From positions 434,001 to 498,000 of the forward strand of contig JBLDXI010000024.1 of assembly GCA_047495785.1 (NCBI GenBank): DNA of 64,000 bases. The letters run 5' to 3'. This stretch comes from Lepidodermella squamata (taxonomy: Eukaryota; Animalia; Gastrotricha). A program made the translations under genes and the position numbers. The notes below the pieces were generated by a model. It worked only from the letters and a program-made list of their open reading frames with translations. It made no database searches and had not been told where the DNA came from. This document shows, piece by piece, positions 22,609 through 64,000 of the stretch; positions within the stretch are counted from its first letter, which is position 1; each line of letters starts with the position of its first letter.

Positions 22609-24037
22609 GTAGCGAATTGACTCCCTGTTGCCCGTTGCCCGAAGACTAGACATTTGTTATTTTGTTATTTTGAAAGAGGAAAGAGAAAACAAGCTTGAAT
22701 TACAGGAGCGAAAAGAAATAATGGGTATAATTCCTAAGCATTAAATATTTAGGCTCTCGTCTGATGTTTAATGCCGGACACCGGTTGCAATATCACAGGC
22801 GTGAAGCGTGAAACTTAAAGCACACAGCATACAGTAGGTAGGTAGGATAGGGTACAGACAAGCCAGGCGCCGCGAACGACGAACGACTCAACGACATGAC
22901 CATAAGGTGGCGTAGTGGCTAACGCCCGTAACCCGTAACTGGGCCTGACTGAGGATGGCGACAAACGATTGAACGATTGAATAGATGTTGGCTCCTGAGC
23001 ATTCCGGCCATTAGAGGCCACTCTCACCCTTGTCTACGCCTTTAAGGGGTGGCTGCGGGAGTATCCGTGTCAGAAGCTCGAAATCGCCTGTCGCACCACA
23101 TCAGTCGAACCAACCTTAAGCTTAAATGCCCATATGCATCCAAGAGCGACACCAGTATAGGGAAGGTAAATCGCCGGGCACCACAACTCTACTCTTCGAG
23201 AAAAGCGAATTTGATTTTTGAAATTTCCCCCATTTTTTGACAGATATTTTGTATAAATAATTTAGCGAGTGAAAAAAGGATAACAAATTACCCACTCAAA
23301 ATTCTAATAATTTAAGGCGCGTAAAAAAAACCCAACGGGTTCGAAATCCCGGCTGGCTCTCAGCTGCAGCGTCGAGTTGGGAGTGTTACGTTGCGGGTGT
23401 GGGGGTTGGGGGTGTGGGACCTTGTTGTTTCGTTGTTAACAACGCGTCGTCGCTTCATTATCTTAGTTAAGGTGCATGAGTATTGAAACCTAAGTGAGCA
23501 AAATACGATATTAGCCCGTTGTCGTAGGACGCCACTTACGATGAGATACAACTCATAGAATCTGGAATCTGGGAACAGCATAAACTTATTCGTGATTCGT
23601 CGTCGGCATCCATTACGTGGAAAACTATCCAAAATTTTCAACGTAGAAATCCAATCCAATTGATACTAAATTTAGGACTAGATATTCGATACAAATGAAG
23701 CACTGATATTATTTACCGTTCTCGTGTTATCGTCCAATTTCATTCGTAGAACCACCCTCTTCGAAGGCTCCTCTCGAAGAGGCAAGCCTTAAGCCTTCAT
23801 TCGGGCCTATCAGAGGACTCGGTCCCTCTTAGATCCCTCTTAGAAGGCCTGTATCTTGCGCTTGATATCCCACTACTTTTTTAATTGCACGAAAGAAAAT
23901 GTAATGCACAATTTGGCATTGGTGAAGTTTTAGGAATACCAAATTCACCCCTAACCCTAGCCACTGTCGATAAAATTACCTTCTTTTTACGCTTGCTTGC
24001 TACGTTTCCTAGATTGAATATACAATATTATAATCTA

Positions 24038-25620
24038 ATGAATAACGACCGAGAACATCTCGAGGGTGATGAAGGTGACCATGCGGTGGAAAATGGCGAA
24101 GGAAAGAAAAAAAGTAAAAAAAAGATCGCAGAAGGGGCGCATGTACAACCAGCCGAGGCACAAGATCTAATCAATACTGTGCAAAAACTTCTACTGTCTC
24201 ATGGCGGCGAAGCTACCGCCCCGAAACAACTCGACGATGCCGCGAAACGGAAGTATGAATTCTGGGAGACGCAGCCTGTTCCTCGCTTTGATGCCAAGGT
24301 TGTCGAGAACAAAGCTATCGAGCCAGATAAGGAAATTAGCAGTCTTCGCCAAGAGCCATATTCGCTACCTGATGGATTTTATTGGGACGATGTTGACCTC
24401 AACAATACCGTTCAGCTTACTGAGCTTTATACTTTGCTCACTGAGAACTACGTTGAAGACGACGATAATATGTTTCGATTCGATTACGCCCCTGAGTTTT
24501 TGAAATGGTCTGTGTTCCTCAATTTAAATTAAACACTTATCGATGAATTTTTCTTCATTACAGGGCTCTTCAGCCACCCGGCTGGTTGCCACAGTGGCAT
24601 GCCGGGATTAGGGTCAACAAGACGAAAAAGCTGGTTTGCTTTATCGCTGCTGTGCCAAGTCTAATCCGCGTTTACGATAAAACGCAGAAGATGGTTGAAA
24701 TCAACTTTTTATGCGTGCACAAGAGACTTCGCTCGAAACGCGTAGCTCCCGTTTTGATTCGGGAAATTACGCGTCGAGTTAATTTAACGGGAATTTTTCA
24801 AGCGGTTTACACAGCTGGCGTTGTTTTACCTCGACCGGTTGCAACATGCCGTTACTGGCATCGATCGCTCAATCCGAAAAAGCTCATTGAAGTGAAATTC
24901 TCTCACCTTTCGCGTAACATGACCCTTCAAAGGACCATCAAGCTTTACCGTTTGCCTGATTCGCCTTTGACGCCTGGATTTAGAGCTAGCGAGGCTCGCG
25001 ATGTTCCTGCGATTTGTCGCCTTCTGAATGCTCATCTCCAAAAGGCAAATTTGTGTCCAATTTTCCACGATGATGATACTGCTCATTGGTTTTTGCCGAG
25101 AAAAGACGTGATTGAAAGCTACGTCGTCGAGGTACGTTGTTCTTCAGACAAATCCACAAACTCGTTTAATCCCGTATGCCAATTTAGGGTTCCGACGGCA
25201 CTATCACCGACTTCGTCTCGTTTTATTCATTACCGTCGAGTGTAGTGAATCATCCCACTCACAAAACCCTTTCGGCAGCCTACTTGTTCTATCACGTCGC
25301 GACGACAACGAAACTGGAATCTCTCATGCAAGATGCGTTGATTATCGCTAAAAATGTGTGTTTTTAACATATGTCTTGTTCATTTGATCTGACTAACGAT
25401 TTTTCAGAGAGGCTTCGACGTTTTCAATGCCCTTGACCTCTTGGATAATCCAACATTTTTGGAAAACCTGAAATTCGGCGTCGGTGATGGCAATCTGCAT
25501 TATTATATTTACAACTGGCAATGTCCTGAAATGAAGCCGGAGAATGTAATGAATCATTGTTACTGTTACAAAAACTATTTACTTTTGTTTTTTTCATAGA
25601 TTGGGCTCGTCCTGCAATAG
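24038..25620 (+). CDS. NMT: Glycylpeptide N-myristoyltransferase, multi-exon
   Basis: [91 protein letters not shown]; C-terminus IGLVLQ-stop at 25620. Confidence 0.97.
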
Positions 25621-32377: not shown

Positions 32378-34310
32378 ATGAAAACTCTTATTATAGTGTC
32401 TGCGATTTTCGCTGCTGCGTTAGCCTCAGTTCCGTGTGGCTCAAGCGGCAATTGCTGCAAGAGTGGCGAATCATGTTGCAATCTGGGCAATGGAACTTTC
32501 GGCTGCTTCCCTGAGACCGAGGTTGTAATTTCTCTTATTTTAGCTACAATATTTGAAATTTCTTGTTTTTAGGCTGTTTGTTGTGATGGATCGGCCTTCG
32601 CTTGCAAGAAAGATTTCGTTTGTCACATAAAATTTGGTATGTGCATCAACTCTGATATGGTAATCCCTCCAATGACTCCTAGCCACGCTGCGTCATCATG
32701 CACCGATCTCTCCACCCATTTCCATCACGTACAAGCACGATGTGGGCCCAATGGTCTCTGCAATGACAACTTCACTTGTTGCCCAAATGCCAAGCCAAGT
32801 AAATCATTTTGAGCCAAGTTATTCGTATGAATTCATTAGCTTTCAGGCCCAGCGTGTTGTCCGCTGCCGAACGCCGTTTGCTGTCAAGATTTGATTCATT
32901 GCTGCCCAGGCGGGTATACCTGCGATACGGGCAAGCAAGGGTAAGTTCAAACACGGGCGCGGGAATTTTAAGGCTACCACGAATTTAACATACATATTCT
33001 AGATGCGTTCCTTCCAAAGAAATCAGCTCGAAGAGAATCATTAAGCCTTCAGAGTCACCAGTAAATGCAGTAGCGCCTCTTCCCAAAGCAGTTTTCTGCC
33101 CAGACCATAGTGTATGCTTCGACAATCAGACGTGCTGCGCTCTGAAAGATGGCCGATTTGGCTGCTGCCCAATTAGAGACGGCGTCTGTTGCGCTGATGG
33201 TCTTCACTGTTGTCCTAAACATACCACGTGTGATCCTGATCATCAACAGTGTATTCAAGACGGACCCGATTTCCTTGATTTTGTGCAAACTAAACCGACG
33301 AAGTCAATCCAAAATGTTCACGAACTGTCGTCCAAGACGGCTTTTACCAAAGAAATCGTTTGTCCGAACCCAGCCTACAAATGCCCTGACGGTACTACTT
33401 GCTGCCAGGTCAATGGAGGATATGGATGCTGCCCTTTTGCTAACGTGAGTGTAGTGATTTTATTATACGGTCAATAATATGTACTTTTTATTAGGCTGTT
33501 TGCTGTGCTGATGGAAGCAACTGCTGCCCGAGTAACTACACTTGCGACAATCAACACCAGCGATGTGTTCAATCGCCGTGGTTGATGAACTCAAATGTTT
33601 TCGTTCAACCACTGCATAAAACTGGTTCGCGTACCATCAGAAACGACAAAGTCGTTAGAGAGCAAAGTTTTGCTAATGGTCGATTGGTTACCGAAGTTTT
33701 GTGCCCTGATAACTCGTCGGTTTGCGACGACGGAACCACTTGCTGCCAAATGGCCGATGGTACCTACGGCTGCTGTCCCTACGTTAACGCCACCTGCTGT
33801 GCAGATCACCAACACTGTTGCCCTGCAGGTTACACCTGTGATTTGGTTCATCAACAATGCACCCAAAGTGGATTCAATAGGCACATGCCGATGAGCATTG
33901 TTTTCATTGAAACTGTCATCCAAGATGACACTGCTCCCCTTCAACAAGTGACAGGCGAAGAAGCTGACCAGGAAGTCGGCACGCAGATGTTCGGGGAGAT
34001 TTTATCCTTTTTGGACAAAATCATCACCAGTGGTCTGATGGAGAAACCTTTCATTCCGGATTCAAAGCCGGTCGAGTCACAGACTACATGCTCTGTCATC
34101 GATGCATTAATGATTGGCTGTCCTTCGGGCACGTCATGCTGCCGTCCAGTTGGAGAAAACGAAAAGGCAATCTGCTGTCCGGGTAGCGGATCAGTCTCGT
34201 GTTGCGCTGGTGGGTTTTGCTGCCCTGAAAATCACGAGTGCAACGCCTTGACGTCAACGTGTCAGCGCTCTGTCTCAAATGATCGTCAACAAGAAGATTT
34301 GATCGCATAA
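32378..34310 (+). CDS. GRN: Progranulin-like precursor, several granulin modules
   Basis: Signal peptide [17 protein letters not shown]; repeated C-x-CC-x-CC-x-CC-x-DxxHCCP-x-C modules, e.g. [46 protein letters not shown]. Confidence 0.92.
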
Positions 34311-36463
34311 ACATTACATATTTTTTTGGACCTTTGCATGAATGATTATCTTGAAACTATATTGATAGAGCAACGGATTGAGTTTCGATTGAGTAGCTAA
34401 AAAAGCAAAAGTCATTTTATTGTCTTTCGAGCTTCTGAATTATTCCTTTATAAAGTCTTCCGGTTGGTGATTGCAAGTGCGATTTTTGATATAAATTTCC
34501 AAAATGAAGATTATTCTGTTGAACCAACTATGACCAAGTACAATTTCTAATGAAAATTGCGAAACGTATCAAGCAATAAAAATTTCGATTCTATTATTTA
34601 TTGCGTTTTGCTATCAATCCAGCTTTCAATTTTTTGGCCTAAGCTTAACGGGCAGATCGAGTCAGCGAGATAAGTTGAACGGAAAATGCATGTCAAAGGG
34701 CTTGACACCCTGTCGTAGAAAGGCAATCATAATTACCACTCAGCAATACTACTAAAAGATAGCATCAGATAAGAAAGGCGCATGTGTAGAACGTGAAGCG
34801 TTGAGGCTAAGTTAGGGTTTATACAAGCTTGTACGAGCCGTAAAGAGATTTTAAAAACATTCATATATCATGAGCTTTTTACAAGGAAATAATTTCAAAC
34901 ATAATCATAACCAAGTACAGAAATCGTGCTACCAGGGCATATCATCTCATGCCATTTCGTTGCACGAGTCGACGTTCAAACTTCAAACAAACAACCGCAT
35001 TAATTCGCGAAATGTTAGCATGCGCGCAACTGGTCGGTGCGGCACGCGGCTCGTGTCCACCAAACTTCACATAAGGTAGAAAGCTTAGCCACCATCGCCC
35101 TACTGCCGTTCAACAACCGCATTGAGCGATGCGGCAGCTTGTTTCGCGTGAAGGCGGAGCGCATTACTATACGGGGGCTATGCGTGCGCGTAATTTTACG
35201 GTTTTACGATTTTTTTAAAAGCGCACAAGTGGTCATAAGACTATAAGATATAAAGAATACAAACTAAGGTCATCATCATCATCATCGTGTATATGAATGC
35301 AATAAATATGTATGCGGCTGAACACGCCGGTGCCGCTATAGCAATCCCATAACCACCTATAATACACGCTAACCCTGCCGCTGCCCCCCAGAATTTTTTC
35401 GCATCCTTCTTTTCGAATAATACTTAGATAGCTTGCCGTATAAGTTGGCGCTGCTGTGGCTTGTCATGCCGTTTTGGTTAACACGTGCAGCCCTTCATGC
35501 GCACTTTTCTCTTTAGCGCGTGTATTATATATTACGTAAAGTACAAGATTATTATAATCACATGCCAGCAGCAGAGTGGCAGAGGCGCATCTTGAAATTT
35601 TCATTTTATTTCGTTCGTGCGTTGTGGGCTTTTCGGAGAAATTCATCTAGCATGCGCCTCATGTTATTATTAACACGGGCGAGCGTACGTGCGGGCAATG
35701 CGGCCGCACTAACGGGTCATTGATGCCATTGCTATCACGTTCGAACAGTGTTGGGATCAGCACATTCACCGTTCATACCCGGGAGAAGGACTAGCGGAAA
35801 CGGCATTTGCGTTGTTTTAGCACTTCAAGTGTAAAGTTATTATAGGAATAGGTTATTATATTATGGCGGGATGGTGTATCGCTAAGTTACACCGATTGCC
35901 ACAACCTTAAAATGCACTGTCAACCCTCATTGTAACAATTGTGCGCTTTTTAGCAAAGTGATTATTATCCTCATCTTCTCGGGTCACAACGGCGACACGC
36001 TCGCACCGAGTGTGAGTTGGTACGCAACGGGAAGTGAGATGCGTGGCTGCGCATAATTTTATTGAAAAAACATTTTTCGCGCTTCACTTGGATCTTCGCC
36101 ACATATGCTCTATTACCATTATAATGGCCTAAACTTGTATCCATTTAACTTGAACATTGCTTACAAATACAAATATTTGTTTAAGGCACTGAAAGTTTCT
36201 AACTCTGGTTTATGAATGTAATTCATCTTCCGCTGTCGACGTTTTGCAATGTGGCTAATGACGACCTCTTTCGACTCTTAAACTGGAATATATTATACGC
36301 TTCTTAATATTATCAAACGCTGAGTGACTCGTTTGACGGTCTATTGTTTCAAGTGAATTCAGCTAGCTTTCATGTTGGAACCGATGCGGAATGCTCCGAG
36401 AGAATTTTTCGCTGAAAACTTTACTATTGTTCTCTTTTATAGAGACCGGTTTTCCCTATTGAA

Positions 36464-39449
36464 ATGCTGCAGAAACGGCGTCTACTGGCGGCGCCTAGAG
36501 TTGCAGCGCTTATTAGTCTTTTCTTAATATTCGGATCGGGTAAGCTAGTTATTTAGGTATTAAACGGAATGACGGATGCGGTGTTTTCTTAGCGGCTGCA
36601 ATTGACGACAGCATGCTTTCGCAATTACTCGCGAGCGTGGGCCTTGCCGGCGACGATAGCAATCAAGACATTGCTTCTCAGGCTGACACCTTGTTGTCAG
36701 CTGATTCTGGAGCAAATCCGCTTCCAGTGGCCGGCTCTGGAGTCACCCACAAGCCTAACCCTACATTCATGCTTCTTGGTGGCGATGCCGTAGCTGGTGA
36801 GGTCGTCGACGGCGGCAACGCTTTTGTTGGATCCTTCGGCAGTTTGCTTGCCGAAGAAACCGACAATGCGACCGATTCGCTGATCGATCGCGGTCGTGGT
36901 CGTCGCGTAATTTATCATGATTTTGATGTTATTTAGGTAATTATATCGCGATTTTCCGCTAGCAATGGGGCATTACCGGCGCCAGTGGACCCCGCAGAGA
37001 CACACGGCCGTCTACGTGCCAAACTACCTGCTCTTGCTTGCAAGAGGCTGGCCCCACTGGACCTCCTGGACCTCAAGGATCTCCTGGTCCACGTGGTCCT
37101 CAAGGATCAGAAGGCCCAATGGGACCACCGGGCAATTCCGGATTGAAGGGCGAAATTGGTCGCCCTGGTGTACCTGGTCGCGATGGCGGCAGCGGAATCA
37201 AGGGCGAACCTGGTCAACCTGGCACAGCTGGCCAGCCTGGTCAGAAGGGTGAAGTTGGTCCACAGGGCAAGGTCGGTCCGTCAGGGCCATCTGGCCAATC
37301 AGGCCAACCTGGGCAGAAGGGAGAGCGTGGTGTCGACGGCAGAGATGGATGCAACGGTGCCGATGGACGCAACGGTGTAACAGGTTATCCCGGTCGTCAA
37401 GGCCCTCAAGGTCCTGACGGTCCTACCGGTCGCAAGGGTGAGCCAGGTACTGCCGACCCTCTGCCAGGCGCTAAGGGTGAGCGCGGCCCCTACGGCGAGA
37501 AGGGCAGCACAGGACGAGACTGTCGCGACGGCTATCCTGGTGCCCGTGGTGAGAAGGGCGATCGCGGTAGCGATGGCGATGCTGGATTCCGCGGCTTACC
37601 TGGTCCAGCTGGTCCTAAAGGATACCCCGGACCCTACAGATCTGGTGTTAAAGGACAGAAGGGCGAAAAAGGCGATATCGGAGAGAGAGGCGAGGTTAGA
37701 ATAACATTGCCTGTCACAAACAACTCGATAGCTTATTTTAACCTATTAGTTTGGCCCTCAAGGTGCTCCAGGTGCTAAGGGCGAAAAAGGCTTGCGAGGT
37801 AAACTTGGAAAATCAAATAATATTCTTCCTATGTGCAAAACCATATATTCTTCATTATCCAGGCCGTGAGGGTGGTCAAGGCCAAGACATTGTCGTCTTT
37901 GGACTACCGGGAACTCGAGGTGCTCCCGGTCCTCAAGGTGATCGCGGTGAACCTGGTCCTCGTGGCCAAACTGGCGAGCGTGGACCTGGCGGTAGCCTCG
38001 GGCCGAGAGGTTTGCAGAGGGAAACGCTTTAAGAACCGGATTTTTGTACAAGTATAATTTTTAGGCGAGCCTGGTGACATTGGACCCGACGGTCCTCAAG
38101 GTTTCCCTGGCGACTGCCAATCCTCCACCAACCTTATTAACGGTGACAAGGGTGACCGTGGCTTCCGTGGTGCACCTGGCGTTGACGGCATGCCCGGACC
38201 TCGCGGCTCCCCCGGATTCAAGGGCGAACCCGGTCGTCCTGGTCCGGAAGGTCCCGCAGGCAGTCGTGGTGAGTCTGGCAGAGACGGTTTCGATGGCCCG
38301 AAAGGTCAGCCTGGCCCTGATGGTGATGGCCGTCCTGGACCAGCTGGTCCTTCTGGTGACAGAGGTGAACGCGGTCGTCGTGGCCCTTCTGGATTCCCAG
38401 GTAACTCCAGCACTTGAAATGTAACGCTCAATTTTATTTATGATGTCGGCAACAGGTCCTCAGGGCGAGAAGGGTGATAACATGTTCGGCCCGCCCGGAC
38501 CGAAAGGTCGTCGTGGTCCATCAGGTCCTCCGGGACCTCGCGGTCAGCCAGGTCCCGTTGGGCAACAAGGCGATCGTGGCCTTCCTGGCCTAGATGGTGA
38601 CATTGGTATTGTCGGTGATCGAGGTGACACTGGTGATGCGTGCAGTGGTCTGTTGACAAGCTACGTCTACACCATCCATTCGCAGTCGACTGAAGTCCCA
38701 GTCTGCCCCCAAAGCGACCACGTTCAACTCTGGGCCGGTTACAGTTTGCTGCACACCGAAGACGAAGGCCGTGCATTCGTCCAAGATCTCGGCCGACCAG
38801 GCTCATGCGTCCGCCAGTTCGATGCTATGCCTTTTATCTTCTGCGGCGCCAACGAAGTTTGCACATGGGGCGCCCGCACAGCTACGTCATATTGGCTCGC
38901 TAGTGACACCCGTCGTGACTACATTAGCCTTTACGGCCTTGATGACTCGCGTGAGAGACCTCTTCGTTCCGACGAAGAGAAATTGCGCCAGATTTCGCGA
39001 TGCGCAGTTTGCCTGTCATACGGTCCTCTCATGGCCGTTCACTCGCAAAACTCCTCTGTCCCAGATTGCCCATCGCCGCAGTGGCAATCCCTGTGGATGG
39101 GCTACAGCTTCGCCATGGTAAGAAGTGAAAATACCTAGAAAATACCGAATAACTAAATGATCTTGCTTTAAAAACCTAGCACACAGTCGGCGTGATGGGT
39201 GGTGGCCAGTTCTTGGAGTCGCCCGGCAGTTGCTTGTCTGATTTCCGTCACCATCCCTATGTTGAGTGCACAGCAAGAGGAGAGTGCGCTTACTACTCGG
39301 AGAAAATGTCCTACTGGCTCGTCGCGAGTGACAAGATGACCCGGTCGTTCTCGAATGCCGTCATTAGGAAACGCGAAGAAGCTGTTAGCAGTATTTCTCG
39401 ATGCCGCGTATGCACTCTTCGTACATCAAACAGGCCTCAACGCGCGTAA
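36464..39449 (+). CDS. Short type IV-like collagen chain A (861 aa, 8 coding exons)
   Basis: Exons 36464-36539, 36593-36906, 36963-37694, 37750-37798, 37863-38009, 38065-38400, 38456-39117, 39180-39449 give one open frame: signal peptide, acidic propeptide, CxxxCxC, Gly-X-Y aa160-613, NC1 with two C4 repeats and 12 Cys. Confidence 0.92.
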
Positions 39450-40074
39450 TCATCTGTTAACGATATCTATTCGACTTACTCTTTATAGACTGTTGATAAA
39501 ATACTGAAAACTGTCGCTTTTACTTTGAAAAATGTGTCACACACCCGCTTTTATATCTAAATGTCTCTATTTGCGGTCATTCAAGGGGCTACAATACCAT
39601 TCTTGGCTTAGTGAGGCACAGCTGATTGAATATATTTTCATATTATGATACTTCGCGAGTTCCCGGTATTAACCTCCCCTAGCCGTCGAGGTTCTTCTCC
39701 ACGAGTACGCTATATTTTCTTGCGCAAAAACTCGCTTGGAACAGAATGATTTACTATCGAAATTGTTTCGTCTACCTTGTCACGAAATGTCTGCAATTTC
39801 AACAACTCATACGAAAATTATATAGACTGCCATTGCTAAATTTTATGTTTTTTACGTATTTTTATCGCTGTGCCCGTTAACTAATATTTGAAAATACCGG
39901 GGAATATCCGAGTTATCTGAGGAATGATGCGTTTGGGCGAAATCTTCCAACATATCGCCGTGAATTTCTACATCGAATCGCCATGTTTGATTTTTTGAGA
40001 CAAGAAAAAATACTGTTTAAGCGCGATGCTAAAGTTCTTTCCATATTTTAGGTCAGCTTGATCACATTGTTAAC

Positions 40075-43089
<3,015 letters not shown>

Positions 43090-44749
43090 ACTATAGCCTC
43101 GTCACAGTATAATCATTATCAAATTATTAACAACAAAAACTTCCATAGGAGAACAAATCCATATCACTCTCTTTTTGAATGATGAATGGCTTTTTAAGGA
43201 CGCTTTTGATAAAGTTCAGCAATTTGCCAATAACTACCCCCGAGTCCCGGTACTGCCATTGCTTCTGATGTTTTGGTGAAGTATTTTCAATAGCTTATGT
43301 CATCTGCCTAAAAGCGGGCATACCTCTGACCCGCCGACTCAGACTCTTTTCTCGCAAGTTTTAACACTCATGCGTTGTTTAACGGCTGACCGTGGTTCGT
43401 CATTGGTTTTTCTGCTATTTTTATGTCGTCTAACAAATTACCTTGATATTATGTGAACGAACAAAAAGCGGACTTATTTTCTACCAGCTATATAAAGTGA
43501 CAAAATATTTTTCTTGTGTATGTGTCTTTGTTCACATTTTCAACTGCCAACATATGGATAGTCGTGTGTGCCTGAAGTTATGGGCTATCGAATTCGGAAG
43601 GTAATTTGCGGTTTTTCATGTTTTATTTTTCCTTCTAAATAAAAAACGAAAATAAAAGGAATGGAAGGCGATAATGAAAGAAGGAAAATATGCGACAAGC
43701 ATTATCATCTTTACAACGATGGGAAATAAAATCCGAATAGACAGCTATCTTGATCGCGGTATTACAATTTATTCAACGTGTACCTTTCAAGTCAGCTTAA
43801 AGTCATTTCGCTCGCTAAACCTAAAATACCTCGCAAGATTATAGCGTAAAAATGAACGCATAGAATTCATCTATGGGTTCAAAATAAAGCTAATCATCCC
43901 CCGAAAGAACTGGATTCCTCAATGAAAAGAACGGGTTTAGTTTCAGCAATAACTGGAGTTCTAGATGGTTGAAGGGCGTTGTTTTCATGGGCTTGATGGC
44001 ATCAAAAGATGCAAAGCCATTACACATTATTCTGTGGAACGAAATGCAAAAGTCTGAAAAATTAAATTGCCGCCTCTCTGTTTGGCCTTTTGACGCAATG
44101 AATTAAGAGACTATGAAAACCACAAACTCAGCAGCAGCGGAGATGGGCCTCCCTCTGAAATGGTAAAAGAGCGGTCTTGTTTTTATTTTTGATTCATCGT
44201 CGCTTCGCGAGTATTTTTCAATGCCGCGCGCAAAATTAGGCGCACATGTCATTGTCGCCGGCGTTGTTGACGATTGAGCGCGAGAGGCGAGCGCAAAAAC
44301 GGTGCAGCAGCCGCGCGCGCTGTCGAAACAACACATAACGCGAAAATATGAACCAGCAAGCGCGCATGTGTGGCGCACCCAGCCTTGTCGTATATCGCCG
44401 TATTTTTGCGCTACACGAAAACGTCAGGCGGCGCTCTTTACCGCACTGCGCGCTATAGTTATGCTTTTTGTTTCATGCTTTGTTAGAAAGTGCGCTCGCC
44501 GAACTTTCATCGGCTCAACAAACAATCATCAGACGCTATTAGTGTAAAAGCGTGCGCGACGCTTGAATAAGCTGTGGATTTTATAGTGACTTCGTACCCT
44601 AATTAAACTTGCCTTTAGTATCCCTAAACTTCCTCCCCAGTTTCTATTGTTTGGTTTTTTTTGTTTCCGGTGCTCGATTATCGCGCCTTAATTACACTTA
44701 ATTTTGACATTTTTTCTTCAGAACCTTCAAGATCTGTCCAAACTACGAA

Positions 44750-47700
44750 ATGCGGGGAAGACTGAAGGGCAAAATTGTGATAATATTCTTCACTCTGATG
44801 ATAATTGCTCAAACAGGTTAGCATTTATTTTTCAGCAAGAATTTAAAATTTATTCATTCCATAATAGCATCAGCTTCCGGCGATGAACAAAGCTTCTTAG
44901 CCCAACTATTGGCGAGCGTGGGCCTTCGCAGTGAAGGAATAGTACATACAGCGAATGATACTTCTGCCGAAGATGTAGTTGAAGCGAACGAGCGGATGCA
45001 TCATAGCGTCGGGCGGAAAGATGCGGTGGATTCTGCCTCGCGCGAATCATCCCACGAAGCAGATAGCCAGCAAAAAGTTACAGCTAAGCCAAAAGATCCA
45101 ACTTACATGATGTTGGGCAACGAGCAAGAGAGCGACGATTTCTCCGATGGCGATTATTCTCATAACGTTAAGCTGGAAGCTCCGATAGGACCTCAACGAA
45201 TTGCTAATTTATCCAATGCCGAGCGGCTACGACGTCATCACGTAATCTATTTTTTCTAGGCATTATCAGGCAGATTCGGAAATTTTCTTCTTGATTAGGA
45301 ATATATTTACGACGATGATAATCATTTTAAGCAATATAATGAAGACGAAATGGTAATATTTTCCCGTTGTTTGTTCATTGAACCTCACTTGAAATTTCTT
45401 ATCGGCTTTGCAGCCCTTGGAGTTCCGTGACTCGAATACAGGTCCAACAGGTCCCCGAACTACTCGTCGACCTAACGCACAGCCGCCGAGTTCTGAACCA
45501 GGATCTTGTTCCAGCCCGACAGCATGTTCCTGCTATACAATGCCCGGTCCATCAGGGCCAATCGGACAGCCCGGTCTGCCAGGAGTTCGAGGTGCGCAAG
45601 GCCCCCAGGGTGATCAGGGCCCCCCTGGACCTCCTGGTCTAAAAGGAGACCCCGGAAGGGTACGTCTGCGGTTTCCAACTTGATTTAGTTAGTAATTTTC
45701 GCGTATTTTATTACCAGGCTGGAAATCCGGGTACCGATGGAACAAGAGGACCCAAAGGCGATCCAGGAAGCCCAGGATTTACAGGACCCGGAGGAGACAA
45801 GGGCGATATCGGTCGCCCCGGCTTGAGTGGTCCGCCTGGCCCTCAAGGCAATCCTGGATTACCCGGGGTGAAAGGCGAAAGGGGTATTTTGATCTCAATT
45901 CGCAACATGGAGATGTATCGTATTGCCATGGTTTTTCAGGAACGGATGGACGACCAGGATGTGACGGCAAAGATGGAACTCCTGGAAAGCCGGGGACCAT
46001 GGGATTGCCAGGTGTGAAAGGAAATCAAGGCCCACGTGGCCCAAAGGTATAATTTAATTTTACATAGTAGCACATCATATACCGTTTTCTTTGCCAGGGT
46101 GAGTCTGGAGAAGCCGTTGGAACCCCTGGTGCGAAAGGTGCAAAGGGGGAGCCAGGGACTTGCGGACAAGTCGGTCGATCTGGTATTGATGGCATGGTAA
46201 CTACTGTTTTCACTTTACTTTACAGCTGGTTCTAAATGTTAATTAACAGCCTGGACCAAGAGGGCCAAAAGGAGACAAAGGAGAATTGGGTGAAAATGGT
46301 GAGAAAGGCAATCCTGGACCTCGCGGGCAGAAGGGAGAGAGCGGCAGCGCCAGGCCCGGTGTTAAAGGAGAACCAGGTCCAAGAGGCGACAAGGGTGATA
46401 GTGGACCGGTAACAACATATACTTGACTGCTATTGTTTTGATTCATATCCATCACTTCATGTCGCTCCCGAATTTTAGCCTGGTCCGCCTGGCGAACCTG
46501 GAATGAAGGGTGACAAAGGGGTGCCAGGTTAGTAAAAACTTTAACCGCATACAAGCTATCAGGCAAGATAATATTTTTCCTTTAATTCAGGTGCTCCCGG
46601 CGCAAACGGAAGAAGTCTTTCGACGGTCGGGCTTCCGGGACCTCGTGGTGTACCAGGAGAACCTGGCGATAAAGGCAACGTTGGGCCAAGAGGTTGAAAC
46701 TTTTAACTTACATGTCATCCCATAGTCACACAAATTCTGTTGTATGAAATTCAGGTCCTAAAGGCGAACCTGGCGTCGAAGGGTTACAAGGCAGTCGAGG
46801 TCTGATTAAAACCTTTTTGCACATTTCGTATTCATCTCATGCTTATCCTAGGTCTCCCTGGAGATCCTGGCCCTGAGGGACCAGCCGGCGAGCCCGGAGT
46901 TTGTGTTCAGTCCCCTTCAGAAACAAGAAGTGAAAAAGGTGACAAAGGAGACAAAGGTAGTCAAGGTCCTCCTGGAAATCCCGGTTCACGAGGCGAACCC
47001 GGTAAAGCTCTATCAACTCTTGTTAAAATTAGTGTCTATATGTGTGTTTTGTTCGCAGGTTCGCGCGGACCTCCCGGCAACACGGGCATGGATGGAAACC
47101 CTGGACCTAAGGGAGACCCAGGTTTGACTGATAATAGCATAATCATGACACACATAGCTTTGATCGTCTAAATAGGTCGACCGGGTGCGCCAGGTCCGAA
47201 AGGTGCGGCTGGTCGCGATGCTGATGGAGGCTCAGGGCCTAAGGGACCTCCTGGCGATCGAGGCGACAAAGGGGAAATGGGTGTTAGAGGAGTCAAAGGT
47301 GATCGCGGTCCCAAAGGGGATTCAATGATGGGTGCCCCTGGTGAAAAAGGTAATCGAGGTGCGCAGGGCCCGCCTGGTCTGCCTGGTAGCCAAGGCCCAC
47401 CTGGCCCCAAAGGTGACACCGGGGAAGACGGTTTACCTGGTCGGCAAGGTCCACAAGGCGATAAAGGTGAGAGAGGTGAAAGCTTCGGAGGCCTACTTAC
47501 CAGCTACGTCTACGCCCGGCATTCTCAGACAACTGACGCCCCTGCTTGCGCTGCGGAGGATCACATTCTACTCTGGCGAGGATTTAGTTTGCTTCATACA
47601 GAAGACGAAGGCCGCGCTTTCGTCCAAGACCTTGGCCATGCAGGATCTTGCCTCGCTCACTTCGAAGCTATGCCATTCATTTTCTGCGGAGCCAATGAGG

Positions 47701-50156: not shown

Positions 50157-51287
50157 CTAATTTTTCTCGGCTACTCGGAGCTTGGCAGATCGAGCTCGCG
50201 GGTTCGACTCAATCTCGGCATGAGATGGCACAATTACGTTGTTGTGATGATGGCCGTTGACTATTTCTCGATTAGGTACCGGCTTCCATTTACGCGAAAG
50301 CAGCGATGCCATTTGAGAAGCAGTGAGAGGTTCAGTGCTAGTACGCAAACGCGAATGCAAATACGAATTATCGACGCCAGCCGGAGTTTGAATGTTAACC
50401 GCGTGAAACACGCGCTTAACTATGCGGTCTTCCAATGAATGGAACGATATGACCATACATCGACCTTTAGGTTTCAGCAAATCGTGAGCTAGGTCGATGC
50501 CGTAACACAAATCGTTCAACTCATCATTAACGAATATTCGCAAGGCTTGGAAAGTCCTAGTAGCAGGATGAGCAAATCGACCTAATTTGTCGCGGTTGAA
50601 AACCTCGCCGCGAAAGGAAACTGCCGATATCAAGGCCGCTAACTGCGTGGTTCTCGTTATAGGCCCTCGAGAATTTCGAAAATCAACTATAGCCCGAGCA
50701 ATTTCGTCAGCATTTTTCTCCTCGCCGTAAACTTTGATTATTTTCGTTAGATCGCAAACCGACAGTTGGTTAACGACATCAGCGGCACTTGGCGTGTCCT
50801 TCTCGTGAGGCCCGCCCATTCGCATGTCAAGGGGACCGTCGTGCGAGATGGAAAATCCACGCTCAAAATCGTCAAACTGAGGGCTCGAGACTCCCAGATC
50901 AAACAACACTGCATCGACTATTACATCTGGTTCGATTTTTTTACGAAGGTCCCGAAAGCGGCCGAGATGGGCGGAAATTCTGTTCTCCTGCAGGCTTTTG
51001 CAGCGTTCGATCGCTTCAGGGTCGCGATCCAGACAAATGACCCGAGAATTGGGCCAGTAGTCTAATATCGCTTTCGTGTGGCCTCCACAGCCATATGTCA
51101 TGTCAATAACTGTCGGATTTGAGGAGGATTTCATCACTGGTTCCATACTTTTGAGCACTTCTTCCAGTAATACAGGCATATGTCGCGGCGGGGTCGGCGT
51201 ACTTTCCTGAGTCAATTGATGCTTACTTCGCCGAAAAATCGCTAGAAGAAGACTTTTTGGGCTGTGAAGAAGTTGCTTTGTGAGCAT
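50157..51287 (-). CDS. METTL15: Mitochondrial 12S rRNA N4-methylcytidine methyltransferase (RsmH/MraW family), intronless
   Basis: HMPVLLEEV, IDMTYGCGGHT, LDRDP, DLGVSSPQFD..RGFS..DGPLDMRM, HPATRTFQALRIFVNDEL, ISFHSLEDRIVK, NPRARSAKLR. Confidence 0.96.
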   Translation of the reverse strand: MLTKQLLHSPKSLLLAIFRRSKHQLTQESTPTPPRHMPVLLEEVLKSMEPVMKSSSNPTVIDMTYGCGGHTKAILDYWPNSRVICLDRDPEAIERCKSLQENRISAHLGRFRDLRKKIEPDVIVDAVLFDLGVSSPQFDDFERGFSISHDGPLDMRMGGPHEKDTPSAADVVNQLSVCDLTKIIKVYGEEKNADEIARAIVDFRNSRGPITRTTQLAALISAVSFRGEVFNRDKLGRFAHPATRTFQALRIFVNDELNDLCYGIDLAHDLLKPKGRCMVISFHSLEDRIVKRVFHAVNIQTPAGVDNSYLHSRLRTSTEPLTASQMASLLSRKWKPVPNREIVNGHHHNNVIVPSHAEIESNPRARSAKLRVAEKN

Positions 51288-57535: not shown

Positions 57536-60185
57536 TCAAATAACGCGCTGATTGGACATTTCTATCTCCGTGGCGACAACGAGCTCGTTACTATCCTCAT
57601 TTGCTTTGACGGAGGGCTTGAAATTTCTTTCTTCCCGCATCTCTTTTTCTCTGATTTTCCACCACACGTATGCATTCACCTGTCAAAATATAACGATGAC
57701 GATGAAATAGAATGTATATGTTTCAAGTCATACCGGTAAGGAAATGAATAGAAAACTGCTTGAAAGGCAATGATACCAGATTCCTGAACAAAATTTGAAT
57801 GCATTTTAAAGGGAAATCTGAGAGATGCAATACCTAATGATCGAGTCTCGTAGAGAACGCAATTGCGAGCTGTTTTTTCTTCCACAAGGTTAGCTTGAAT
57901 CGACAGTAGGACATCTTCCGGCTTCAAAATGCTTGTGTCACAGCGGGATGTAGAACTTCCAGAAACTGCTAGAGTTTGTGCACCTTGTTCATCCCAGAGT
58001 AAGCAGTGAGCGTCAAAAACCGAACCGAAAATGACAGGTCCGGGTATAAAGCCTGTATGGTATATTAAAGCGATGAAGCTAATATTTATCAAATAGAAGG
58101 AAGTTTTTTTACTGAATAGGCTGCAGAACGATGAGGTAAGCCCGATCGCCCATAACTTGTAGCGAGGTCCAACAGTTCTATAGCGGGCCCGTAAAATATA
58201 CATATCACATATAGATCAGCGAACTTCAAAGCAAACCTCATCATAATGATTGTCATTGGCGTTGATGGCATTAAAATTAAAATAGCCAGAACAAACGCGA
58301 GCGCATTGTAGGCGAAAAAACTTCGACAAAACCTATGCCAGAATGATTCAGGTTGGCATTTCTCGGGAACCGCACTGCCAGCAGCATTAGTTCCATTGAT
58401 TTTCACGCAAGTGCACTCACTGTAAGTTTTCTAGACATTATTTTAAAATTGGTAGAAATATTGCCGTTTGAAGTGTTCCGTTCTCTTACATTGTTTGCAT
58501 GGAATGACCGGCAACCAGCGTGGCAAGCCGATGCGTAAGTTCTGCCATCACTGCCACAAATGGGGTCGTATTTATTCGGGCAATAGCTGCACTTTTGCTG
58601 ACATTCAGGCGAGGCCGACTGTTGATAGTGCAATGAATGCTTAAGATCTAGGCCAATGATTTGCTCGGGTTCACACTGCAGACCACTCATGAATAGCAAC
58701 CCAATTGCAACAATGGTTGCAATGACAAGAGTACCCAACACAGCGTTTGATTGCGAAATTTTCAACTTAGACATGAGCAGGCCACCGAGAAACGTTCCAA
58801 GGGCACAAGGAATAGGATTCGCAATGCCGGAAAATAGGTTAGCTAGCCACACTGGTTGTCTAAATTGAGCTTCCATGTATTTTGGGTAGAACGTGAAGTA
58901 TCCAGCGGTTATATACACTTGAGCACACGCAAGGAAAACAAGTGCCAGGAAAGTTGTATTTCGAAACAAAATCAAGAAGTTTCGGGGGAGAGTTTGCAGC
59001 GTAAAAGGTTCAGAATCCACGTCATCAGCATCAGTAGTAACGTTCACAGAATCGGCAAAAGGAGAAAGCTCTTTCGAAATTAAAGCTTTTGACGCTTCAG
59101 AAGATTCCCTTGAAATGTCGCTCTTCGCGATGGTTTTACTACTGGAAACACCTTCATCACACGTTTTGTGGTCATCTTTGCTGCGCGTGGGGGATAAACT
59201 CTTTGGGAACAAGAGGAACAGCGGTGAAACAATGAGGAACATTGCCGAGGATAGCAAAAAGCCGCTCCACCAGGCCCCAACGAAGTGACTTGAATTGGGG
59301 TCAGGGGGATTTGGTTCGAATGGATGAACGTAAATTGAACCAGCTACGCCCGATGAGAAGAAGAAGGCAGCAGCCGGTCCAAGCATCATCATGCTATACG
59401 TCGTTCCAATGAATGTGGCACTTCGATCTTTCTCCACATTATTGTCGATGTAAAGTACTCCGATCACGGCGTATGTTGACGATGCGGTTGCAACGATACC
59501 TTGGGCAAGAGTGAGAATGACCATAACCCAAATAGCTTCGCTGGACCCAACAAGTTTCCCTGTCTGCTGCTTGAGTTCTTCTTCCAGTTCGGCAAGTGTG
59601 CAGTTTCGAAGAGGCACTGTCGAATGTGACGAGTCAGTAAGACAAGCAATGCTGGTAACACTTGAATTGGTTTGCTCCATTTTCGGAAAGCGGCTAAGAT
59701 TGTCTGATGCAGCAGGAATTAGGACATGAGGCGAAGCTAGCAAAAAAGCTCCGATCGCCATAAAAAATCCGCGCATTGCCAGGCGACGCGGTATGTGACA
59801 ATTAGTCTCAGTAAAGCTGAATATAATAATTGTCAAATGCCCAATCTCGAAACTCGCCAAGAAAATCCCAGTGTAGAGGCTAATGTGCCAAGTAATATAT
59901 TTTAAAAGTTGGGCATCTTTTGAAAATGTCATTTTACCTGGGCATGCCATACCGCCTTTCAAGCGTAGTAAGAGCAGCTATTGTGTAGGCTAGATAAAAG
60001 CTGTACCAAAACTGAACGACGCACAGTAGAGCAGTGTAGGTGTAGATGTTAATGAACCGACGAGGCAAGAATCCTAATAAGAGATCTTTTTGATGGGCGG
60101 AGGTCCCATCGTGAATTGGATTTGACGATTCGACCATTCCACGCAAATCCGGTTCCTCGACCTTTTTCTTAGCATTGGAGTCCAT
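57536..60185 (-). CDS. Organic anion transporting polypeptide (SLCO/OATP) A, multi-exon
   Basis: ALTTLERRYG, SFEIG, LYIDNNV, FVGAWWSGF, FYPKYMEAQF, Kazal-like YDPICGSDGRTYASACHAGC, FIPGPVIFGSVFDAHCLLW; last exon VNAYVWWK..stop at 57536. Confidence 0.92.
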
Positions 60186-61789
60186 GATATGGTAGAAGGC
60201 CACGACGCCAAATGAAAGAAAACTTTATTTCTGAAAGATAATTAGATGATCCTCATAATCGTCACGTTTACCATAAAAGGTTTTTACGTACTGAACAAAA
60301 CGTTGGCCAGGTGCTTTTCATGACCGCAGTCAGCTCTTCATCGTTTTACTCTGCCAGCTATATAATATAAGGATTACAAGGCTAAGCACAAATTGAAGCC
60401 GAAATGCCCGTAGTAGCGTAACGTGGTATTATTTGCCCTACGCAAATAGCTATCTTAAAAAAATGTGTGATAGCTATCGCTGCTAGCAAAAAAATGAAAA
60501 TGGAACTAATTTCATCTTCATGTATAAGTAATATTTGCGTGACTGGATCATGGAAGTAAATGACCCGTCTTGCATGAAAGCAAATTATATATTAGGGATA
60601 TTCGATTTGAAAAACCAGCAGAAGTTTATAATGGTTTGTAAGAGGTCTTTTAGGCTTTTCACATCGAATGGTAATGAGAAATCGGGCTATATTACTTATT
60701 TTGAAAAGAAATAATGTGCTGTTTTATCGCGTAGCCCCACCTCAGTTGAGATTGCTTTTCTGAATGAACAAATGGCGCCGGTCCAGTAAACATGCGCTTC
60801 CGTATTCGCCTATTTATTATCTCTCGCGGCCTTCCTATATTATATATTCGCTACGCTATATATTTCATACCTTCGGACATATTATTGATACCGTGCATAT
60901 ACTCGCCCATTTGGTTGTCCCTGTTATCGCTCAGCAACTACTGAAAGAGTAAAAGGCGCGCTCTCTAATCCTAAGAAAACACAGGGCTTGAGCTCTATAT
61001 GAGAAAGAAACTGGGATTTACGCCAGCCGCAGATCAACAGGTATAAAATGTAATTCGCTCGCTAGATGTACTTATAATTTTATACATGTGGAACGGAGAT
61101 TCCGTTTAAGGCAGATTTTACGCTAACCGTATTCTGTGAGGAAAAGCCTTCCCGCGATCAATTTTATATAATTTCCTGCTTGAACAACAGCGGAAAAAGT
61201 GCGCTACTTCAGACGTCATCGCCTATAGCTTAAACTTCATTGGTAAACATCATAGCAGCAGATAGAGGTATTAGAATATCGTGCGAAAAATACCAATAAT
61301 CTAAAATGAACTATATAAGCATTTTATGTTACTAGATGCGTGTTATTGGCGAGAAAACGTTATGCGATAGTTGTAGGAATGAAACCATTAACACCTATTC
61401 CACAGTGAAACGTTAATTCTCCGATGGTTTAGCTGGAATCAGCTTTTATTTTCAGCATTTATTTCCGCAAATATTTTTAGCCGGCAAATTTTTCATTTTT
61501 CATTCGAAGTTTTTTAAATTCAGCACAATGAGAAGAGCGCAAAAAGCTGGTAGTTCATACCTTGATAAACCCTTAAAGTACATTGACAATAGCCCATCGG
61601 CTTTCGAACTTCCCTGTGCGATTGAGCAACAACATCGGTTTTCCTGGGGAATTTAAAAAATCTAAACGAGAAGGTGAATTCGCAGTACTCATGTTCGAAC
61701 AAGCCCACGACGTCGCGAAGTCAATCCCTCTAGATATGGAAGTGTAAAATTTGACGGAAAGTGTCTCACATGTAACATTCACGTGAGCA

Positions 61790-62080
61790 ATGAGACTTCA
61801 TTCGTTGATTATATTTTTAGTATTTCTCACTTTGATGCCTATTGGTATTTTGCCCTTTGCTATCAGCCGAGAAATGCGACTTAGCTTCCGCCGCAGATTT
61901 CCAAACAGGGCATCCCGCCATTCACGCTCTACTACGGCCGAGGAGGACAAGTCGCGAAATCAACTTCAAGGAAGCTCGTTATTGGAAACTCTAACGAGAG
62001 TTGAAAATACAGGATCGAAATACTTCAAAGAAGACTCCGGCAATCGCGAACAAGCGCCTTATTCTCATTATGACATTTAA
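61790..62080 (+). CDS. Candidate small secreted protein (96 aa), orphan
   Basis: ATG, hydrophobic signal-like MRLHSLIIFLVFLTLMPIGILPFAIS, basic motifs RRR and RHSR; no recognisable family. Confidence 0.35.
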   Translation: MRLHSLIIFLVFLTLMPIGILPFAISREMRLSFRRRFPNRASRHSRSTTAEEDKSRNQLQGSSLLETLTRVENTGSKYFKEDSGNREQAPYSHYDI

Positions 62081-62212
62081 AACGGCTAATTCTTTGGTTG
62101 AATACTTTTATTTACGTATTTATTTAATGCTAAATATTAATGCGAAATTAAATTGATCGTTTTGTCAATCAGACCAGTGAACTTTCAAAGTAATCGGACA
62201 TTGTGGGAGTTA

Positions 62213-64000
62213 TCATTTCTTAGTTTTCTCTTTAGAAAGCAATTCGCCGGCATTAAAAACTTCCTGCTCGTCATCATCGGCGTTTTCCTGCTTTCGAAGC
62301 TCGGCCTCTCTTTCATTTTTTCGGCACTTCCACCACACATAGCCATTCACCGGTAAGGAAAGAAACAAGAACAGACTTGTGATAGCATGAAACCAGAAAG
62401 ACAGACTGTTCGGCTCAAAAACAGAACAATGCCTGACGGGGTCAGATACTTCGTTCGCCGATGACTTCGAAGGAGGTGTAGTCGTTGTGCAACCTGCAGC
62501 TTGAGGCGTCTCAGTCGAGGATTCTTCCCAATATAAACAAACCGAGTCGAAAACTGCACCGTAAATTACCGGTGCTGGTATGAAGCCTGTCAAAGGTAAA
62601 ATTTTACGAATTGCTTATCGAATCATGTCGAAAAACAAGTTTTACCCAAGAAACTGCAGAAGGAGGATGTGAGACCCACAGCCCAAGACTTGTACTTCTC
62701 TCCGACTACTCTGCAGATGTTGAGGAAAGATGAATGATGACGCATAAAAGGAAATAATTTTGTGAAACAAACCTCATCATAATTATTGTTAGAGGAGTTG
62801 TAGGTAAAAAAATGATGACAGCAAAAATGAATGCCAAAATGTTATAGATGTAGAAAGTTAGGCATCTCGGTGAACTGCCATTTTCTTCGCCACATCTACC
62901 GATAACCGCATAGGATTCAGACCAAGTTTCATTGTTCGGCGACAGAGCATTTGAACAGGCACATCCAGAGAAATGAGTACCATTCCCGAAACGACAGCCG
63001 GCGTGGCACGGCGACACGTAGTGATCGGTATTATTTACACAAATCGGTTGATAAAAGGATGGGCAGCTGTTACAGCCACAAGAATTCGTTGCATTCGAAT
63101 TTGAGAGGCCGATCAAATCGCCGCTTTCGCATCTCATAGGTGACATGGCCATTAAAGCAATGCCGACAATAAGAACGAAGATAAATGTGTAACCCAATGA
63201 TGCAGATTGACTGAGTTTCATTTTCGACATCAGGTACCCGCCGATGAAAGTGCCCAATGCGCACGGTATGGGGTTGGCGATCGCCGAAATAAAATTTGCA
63301 GCTTTTGTACTCTGCAGGAACACCGTCTCAAGGTATTTCGGATAAAAGGTGAAGTAGCCAGCTAAAAAGTAGGTTTGCATGCAAGAGATGAATACTAGCG
63401 CCAGAAACAATTTGTTTCGGAAAAGTATTACAAAATTCCGAGGTATCGCCTTGAGCGAAAATTTCTCCTCTCCCACGGGGTTAACTTCGTTTTCTGCCTT
63501 GCTTTTACGATGGTGTAAGTGATGCTGATGCTGGTGACTTTTTCTTCTCGGGGTAAGTTGCATCGGAAAGAAGAAGAAAAATGGAGCAACAATGGCGAAC
63601 ATGATCGCACAAAGCACAAATCCAATCCACCAAGCTCCCACAAAAGCAGAAGAATTCTCACTAGGCGGATTAGGCTCTAGAGGACGGACGTAAACCGTGG
63701 AAGTAACGCCAGAGGAGAAGAAAAACGCCGCCGCTGGCCCCAGCATCATCATACTACGCAAAAAATTAAAGCCCCAATCTCGATTTGTTAAAGAATTCAC
63801 AAACCTGTAGACAAAGCCAATTAGCGTTGAAGATCTAGATTTATCCACGTTGTTGTCAATGTATAAAATCCCAATGACGTGGTAGGTTGAAGAGGCGGTT
63901 GAAACGACTATTTGAGCAATTACCAGTAAAATCAGAGCAGTAAGAGCGACAGAATTTTCGTCCGCATCTTCATCGGTCGTGGATATCGATGAAGTGTTAA
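62213..64000 (-). CDS. SLCO/OATP B, 3' part (5' end beyond window), tandem paralogue of A
   Basis: LYIDNNV, MMMLGPAAAFFFSSGV, FVGAWWIGF, AGYFTFYPKY, YQPIC..YVSPCHAGC, FIPAPVIYGAVFDSVCLYW; shares long blocks with gene A. Confidence 0.92.

Follow-up and report, generated by a model that had tools for sequence, protein, structure and literature searches.

An acidic two-motif N-terminal module, with putative convertase sites in two of three chains, in tandem collagen-IV-type genes of the gastrotrich Lepidodermella squamata

To our knowledge, collagen IV-type assembly proceeds without removal of a propeptide, unlike that of fibrillar collagens, nematode cuticle collagens and cnidarian minicollagens. 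The window analysed here, a 64,000-nucleotide stretch of Lepidodermella squamata DNA (GCA_047495785.1, contig JBLDXI010000024.1, positions 434,001 to 498,000), carries three neighbouring genes for short collagen-IV-like chains, designated A, B and C, in which an acidic segment encoded by exon 2 lies between the signal peptide and a cysteine cluster. The locus raises the question of what this segment is, whether it has relatives, and whether it is a pro-region or a lasting part of the chain. Gene models, hand-built splice by splice from sequence, place the three genes in tandem, all on the plus strand:

36464-39449, plus strand: chain A gene, 8 exons, 861 residues
40075-43089, plus strand: chain B gene, 8 exons, 878 residues
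44750-48289, plus strand: chain C gene, 14 exons, 895 residues

The acidic exon 2 and its two motifs

All three chains follow one layout, running from the signal peptide through acidic exon 2, a three-cysteine linker and the helix to an NC1 domain. The first-pass annotation of the window had described an acidic segment of 90-125 amino acids after each signal peptide, encoded by an exon 2 bounded by phase-1 and phase-0 introns; the hand-built gene models return the same exon with the same intron phases in all three genes, and the segment measures 93-125 residues. Isoelectric points (pI) and net charges are given with the exons:

36464-36539, plus strand: chain A exon 1, encodes the signal peptide and has a phase-1 end (from sequence; junction 36539/36593 in RNA-like contigs)
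36593-36906, plus strand: chain A exon 2, 105 residues, pI 4.05, net charge -10, no Cys (gene model and RNA-like contigs)
36610-36645, plus strand: chain A motif 1, 12 residues, predicted helix with a predicted local distance difference test score (pLDDT) of ~70 (pattern match)
36751-36783, plus strand: chain A motif 2, 11 residues (pattern match)
40075-40147, plus strand: chain B exon 1, signal peptide (gene model)
40204-40481, plus strand: chain B exon 2, 93 residues, pI 4.05, net charge -11, no Cys, no Arg, no RxxR (gene model; 3′ junction in RNA-like contigs)
40218-40253, plus strand: chain B motif 1, 12 residues (pattern match)
40356-40388, plus strand: chain B motif 2, 11 residues (pattern match)
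44750-44816, plus strand: chain C exon 1, signal peptide (gene model)
44868-45241, plus strand: chain C exon 2, 125 residues, pI 5.12, net charge -9, no Cys, ends RLRRHH (gene model)
44891-44926, plus strand: chain C motif 1, 12 residues (pattern match)
45086-45118, plus strand: chain C motif 2, 11 residues (pattern match)

The introns of the three genes are uniformly GT-AG (27 of 27) and, with one exception in chain C, measure 51-70 nt (26/27). Over 36400-42399, the interval in which RNA contigs were compared with the models, contigs of the RNA-like run X1 show all seven chain A junctions (7/7, including 36539/36593 and 36906/36963) and confirm introns 2-6 of chain B (including junction 40481/40535), the models of chain C and of chain B intron 1 being built from sequence signals. 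A second public run is contiguous DNA across the locus, and a third shows a pair of the junctions together with a poly(A) tail near 40026. The boundaries of exon 2 are correct on both sides in chain A and on the 3′ side in chain B, and the three short collagen-IV-like genes are taken to be transcribed, as the RNA-like contigs show for A and B.

Within exon 2, two motifs attributed to all three chains in the earlier reading were verified at their coordinates, with the patterns S[MF]L[SA]QLLASVGL (motif 1) and K[PS]..PT[FY][ML][LM].G (motif 2). Motif 1 starts 3-8 residues past the predicted signal-peptidase site in every chain, motif 2 follows ~45-65 residues further on, and neither was found elsewhere in the window in six frames. 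A weaker third block, G.(N)LLAE, is common to A, B and an orthologue of chain A from a metagenome (see below). The paralogues have reached saturation at synonymous sites (pS 0.65-0.98); their non-synonymous difference is 0.33-0.55 in the linkers, against 0.04-0.18 for motif 1 and 0-0.37 for motif 2. Since the motifs are kept while synonymous sites are saturated, they are under purifying selection, and, judged from their codons, their conservation is due neither to chance nor to recent gene conversion.

AlphaFold2 modelling of exon 2 from a four-sequence alignment gave a mean pLDDT of 56 and a predicted template modelling score (pTM) of 0.18, with a helix in residues 5-15 (motif 1) only, at pLDDT ~70; outside motif 1, exon 2 is thus predicted to behave as a disordered acidic chain. 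The suggestion that motif 1 forms an amphipathic helix did not hold: with a hydrophobic moment of only ~0.2 and a mean hydrophobicity of 0.4, it is a weak, small, hydrophobic predicted helix that is not clearly amphipathic.

Relatives of the module and of the chains

A Pfam scan of the three exon-2 peptides (E<=1) returned no family, hence no described collagen N-terminal family; the peptides had no match among PDB sequences (E<=10), the ESM Atlas held no look-alike of the module, and a JGI metagenome scan with the two motif patterns gave 77 pattern matches, none of them confirmed. Profile search of the three peptides against 1.84 billion representative proteins produced two matches (P0001 and P0002), and a word-indexed search with a four-sequence profile against 5.8 billion clusters produced P0001 only. 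P0002, a 2878-residue cystatin-repeat/cathepsin protein whose seven repeats are each weakly motif-2-like, was rejected as summed chance similarity. P0001 is an open reading frame (ORF) fragment on a 696-nt metagenome contig, L001, which carries an orthologue of chain A, 75% identical in DNA, that comprises exon 1, an intron, exon 2, a second intron and the beginning of exon 3. Both motifs are kept in L001 and the linkers have diverged; its exon 2 ends RGNRRPR and its exon 3 starts QWGFSGASG, as compared with RGRGRR and QWGITGASG in chain A.

The first-pass annotation had called the segment novel, and the searches described here agree, placing the exon-2 module in no described family and finding one relative, the chain A orthologue. 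Chains A, B and C are themselves absent from the databases searched, and full-length relatives in annotated proteomes were sought through the exon-2 profile and the NC1 exon only, so that the lack of relatives is strong for sampled, annotated organisms and not absolute.

The remainder of each chain is of collagen IV type. NC1 consists of two C4 repeats (PF01413 at E 3e-40 and 2.5e-20, Pfam), with 12 cysteines and both HSQ motifs per chain. The interrupted triple helix is 456 residues long in each chain, with interruptions and cysteines at matching positions; cysteine offsets relative to the helix are -7, -5, +100 and +297 in all three chains, and A and B also share +454. The first part of exon 3 encodes the three linker cysteines, which form a CxxxCxC knot in A and B and CxxxxxCxC in C.

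36963-37049, plus strand: chain A, beginning of exon 3, with QWG..., a basic patch and a CxxxCxC knot just ahead of the triple helix (gene model)
37050-38640, plus strand: chain A triple helix (gene model)
40620-42170, plus strand: chain B triple helix (gene model)
45414-45545, plus strand: chain C, beginning of exon 3, with another basic patch (RTTRR) and a CxxxxxCxC knot ahead of the helix (gene model)
45546-47500, plus strand: chain C triple helix (gene model)

Canonical collagen IV shares the NC1 with two C4 repeats, 12 cysteines and both HSQ motifs, and its 7S region shares the cysteine cluster just ahead of the helix and the in-helix cysteine at residue 100. It differs in helix length (~1400 residues versus 456 here), in gene orientation (a head-to-head pair versus a tandem on one strand) and at the N-terminus, where the present chains have an acidic extension of 93-125 residues between signal peptide and cysteine cluster; the corresponding non-collagenous region of canonical chains is short and Cys/Lys-rich (PMC5395295). 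A, B and C are therefore collagen-IV-type chains by their NC1 features, but their helix length, gene orientation and N-terminus set them outside the canonical definition. Identity as spongins, which have no HSQ motifs and lack four of the collagen IV cysteines, having three of their own (PMC5395295), was rejected, as A, B and C have both HSQ motifs and the full 12-cysteine pattern.

Contigs behind the closest matches of a search with the NC1 exon yielded three further gene types, each encoding a long non-collagenous extension followed by a three-cysteine knot, a short helix and NC1:

L002:7756-10042 (also L003): signal peptide; extension of ~210 residues, free of basic residues and rich in Gly, Tyr, Ser and Gln; CxxxxCxC knot; short helix with a GCNGT site; NC1. 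The last intron has the position of that in A, B and C
L004:3468-6322 (also L005-L007): signal peptide, ~65 acidic residues and a His/Arg-rich block (RSRGSRRIRLR) in one exon; then a 58-nt phase-0 intron and QPGRRPRPG ahead of the knot. The order acidic, basic, knot is that of A and C, without motifs 1 and 2
L008:51-2948 (JGI contig): uninterrupted 966-residue ORF, either intron-free or RNA-derived; extension of 260 charged residues without R-x-[KR]-R; CxxxCxC knot; helix of ~448 residues; NC1

The NC1 tree separates A, B, C and the L002 and L004 types, with support of 100/100, from the sampled canonical collagen IV chains; within it the three window chains branch as (A,(B,C)), the longest branch being that of B. 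Regular-expression and tblastn searches show that the L002-L008 genes lack motifs 1 and 2 (for L008, hhalign probability 0.2%), and the extensions of the L002, L004 and L008 types are unrelated in sequence to one another and to exon 2. On sequence grounds, the knot-helix-NC1 body is constant across the family and the N-terminal heads are interchangeable, the A/B/C clade having the acidic version with two motifs; exon 2 is, on the same comparison, a clade-specific variant of a variable N-terminal module and belongs to no described family.

Basic sites and the fate of the extension

The earlier description of the basic ends (RGRGRR then Gln in A, RLRR in C, no RxxR in B) is borne out by the gene models:

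36889-36906, plus strand: chain A RGRGRR, furin-type R-x-R-R in the last codons of exon 2, Gln being the first codon of exon 3 (sequence)
45224-45235, plus strand: chain C RLRR, with no other R-x-[KR]-R in the entire 895-residue chain (sequence)

Arginines at P6, P4, P2 and P1 give chain A what reads as a strong furin-type consensus. The basic residues of its exon 2 are the motif-2 lysine and four arginines, all four of which (4/4) lie in the last 6 of 105 residues (p ~3e-6 under random placement), and the pattern in the orthologue is similar. Between signal peptide and cysteine cluster, R-x-x-R or R-x-[KR]-R occurs in two of the three chains (RGRR in A, RLRR in C) and in the chain A orthologue (RRPR); chain B has no RxxR within its first 230 residues. 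Given the NC1 topology, with B on a long branch, the site is most simply ancestral, which suggests that chain B has lost it.

Comparable sites are known in other collagens. In Caenorhabditis elegans cuticle collagens, N-terminal RxxR cleavage by PCSK/BLI-4 is needed for secretion and assembly, and loss of the RxxR sites or of the PCSK-family convertase BLI-4 leads to intracellular retention and a disrupted matrix (PMC10538796). Like A and C, nematode cuticle collagens and MACIT collagens (membrane-associated, their triple helix interrupted) have RxxR N-terminal to the first cysteine cluster and helix; they differ in having no sequence relationship to these chains (exon 2 has no Pfam match), and the present chains differ from them in the NC1 C-terminus, in the one chain without a site and in that cleavage here is a prediction. 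Cnidarian minicollagens consist of a signal peptide, a short propeptide that is removed, a Cys-rich domain and a short helix (PMC7981951), and so resemble A and C in having an N-terminal piece, here only putatively removed, ahead of a Cys-rich part and a short helix; unlike these chains, they have a propeptide of 4-20 residues usually ending in KR, a six-cysteine domain, a helix of 12-16 triplets and no NC1, and show no sequence similarity. Pro- or extension regions that carry a dibasic site at a collagen N-terminus are accordingly a known arrangement, and what is new is the presence of one on a collagen-IV-type scaffold.

Convertase removal of the extension from A and C is plausible from these residues, and we would put the reading of the acidic extension as a pro-region so removed at slightly below an even chance. 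The extension would prevent early association of the trimer through its cross-linking N-terminal knot, until a furin/PCSK-type enzyme cut it off A and C late in secretion; the cut in chain A would leave Gln-Trp-Gly as the new N-terminus, chain B, having lost its site, would keep its extension, and the two motifs would most likely serve for docking, either to a partner they have in common or to one another. This is favoured by the match of the arginine cluster to the convertase consensus at the end of exon 2 in A, its orthologue and C, by the orthologue, which despite diverged linkers still has RRPR and then QWG..GASG where exon 2 meets exon 3, and by the L004 subfamily, where an acidic stretch, RSRGSRRIRLR, a phase-0 intron and the knot follow one another.

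Several points weigh against removal. Cleavage is a pure inference from sequence, the module has been sampled in two species only, and we know of no report that canonical collagen IV is processed at its N-terminus. Chain B has no basic site, and in the orthologue P2 is Pro (RRPR), which makes the site weaker, though it fits the minimal RxxR. The ~210-residue extension of the L002 type reaches the knot without a basic residue, and that of L008 (260 residues) is without R-x-[KR]-R; lacking a convertase site, these two indicate that extensions in this family can be permanent domains. Chain C adds a further complication in the intron after exon 2 (45242-45413), which measures 172 nt as against 51-70 nt for the other 26:

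45299-45352, plus strand: candidate 54-nt phase-0 micro-exon of chain C, encoding 18 acidic, Tyr-rich residues (splice scores)

This candidate splits the intron into 57 and 61 nt, and its acceptor and donor scores (8.6 and 8.8) are within the range of the 26 other sites. Chain C probably has this extra acidic micro-exon after RLRRHH, which would bring it to 913 residues; if so, its acidic stretch continues past RLRRHH, another basic patch, RTTRR, is then the one nearer to the knot, and the equation of exon 2 with a propeptide may fail for this chain.

A permanent, uncleaved N-terminal non-collagenous domain, acting as an acidic flexible arm that tunes network spacing, hydration, and cation or partner binding, with the arginine cluster as part of a basic, Cys-rich cross-linking region, is a possibility we take seriously while holding it rather doubtful. 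Beyond the site-less L002 and L008 types and chain B, it would suit the variation in extension type among short collagen-IV-like paralogues, as expected of heads with functions specific to a matrix, and the Cys/Lys-rich character of the N-terminal non-collagenous region in canonical collagen IV (PMC5395295). It accounts less readily for an arginine cluster that fits the convertase consensus well (P6, P4, P2 and P1 all basic in A), lies exactly at the module boundary and is retained in the orthologue while the linkers diverged; outside this terminal cluster, the basic residues of exon 2 in A, B and the orthologue are the motif-2 lysine and, in B, one further lysine.

The motifs, above all motif 1, might instead be an intracellular handling signal for chaperone docking, vesicle sorting or chain co-alignment rather than part of polymerisation gating, any cleavage being incidental. 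The nearly invariant motif 1 so close behind the signal-peptidase site, its standing as the only part predicted helical with moderate confidence, and its retention in all three paralogues, as for one shared partner, are all in keeping with this. Its low hydrophobic moment, a length of 12 residues that is too short for a coiled coil, and the registration of collagen IV-type chains from the C-terminal NC1 (PMC7619536) speak against it, no partner is known, and we regard it as improbable. Still less credence, close to dismissal, goes to a neutral low-complexity spacer with motifs owed to chance or to recent gene conversion: the segment is indeed for the most part poorly conserved (35-43% paralogue identity) and predicted to be disordered, but motif codons differ at most synonymous positions (pS 0.45-0.98) with the residues kept, which excludes recent conversion and shows selection, and the orthologue, which comes from another species, retains both motifs.

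A bolder version of the pro-region reading is that A, B and C form a heterotrimer in which the acidic propeptide masks the cysteine knot until furin-type removal from two chains, the chain B extension serving as an asymmetric handle and 7S-like polymerisation being licensed by proteolysis. The matching helix interruptions and cysteine offsets are what an in-register heterotrimer would need. We know of no collagen IV-type network that uses proteolytic licensing of 7S-like polymerisation, and consider this scheme unlikely.

Genomic setting and implications

Unpaired splice acceptors lie 21-28 nt ahead of each ATG: tatag in A (36441-36463), tttag in B (40050-40074) and ttcag in C (44720-44749). 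The chain A poly(A) site (~40026) is only ~25 nt before the chain B acceptor. These acceptors and the tight A/B spacing fit spliced-leader trans-splicing and operon-like packing. Elsewhere in the window, ORFs match the following:

90-1151: NDUFS1, C-terminal part
7988-18757: FERM-PDZ tyrosine phosphatase
23885-25242: N-myristoyltransferase
33582-34307: granulin
50160-51287: METTL15-type methyltransferase
58406-63848: two OATP transporters

By these matches, the locus is ordinary compact animal chromatin.

If the extension is indeed removed from A and C before cross-linking, proteolytic gating would have evolved independently on a collagen-IV scaffold, and mutation of the RxxR site would provide a simple handle on the timing of N-terminal cross-linking. 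More modestly, the short collagen-IV-like chains of one small-invertebrate group, with fast-evolving, exchangeable heads on a constant body, are a clear case of modular matrix diversification.

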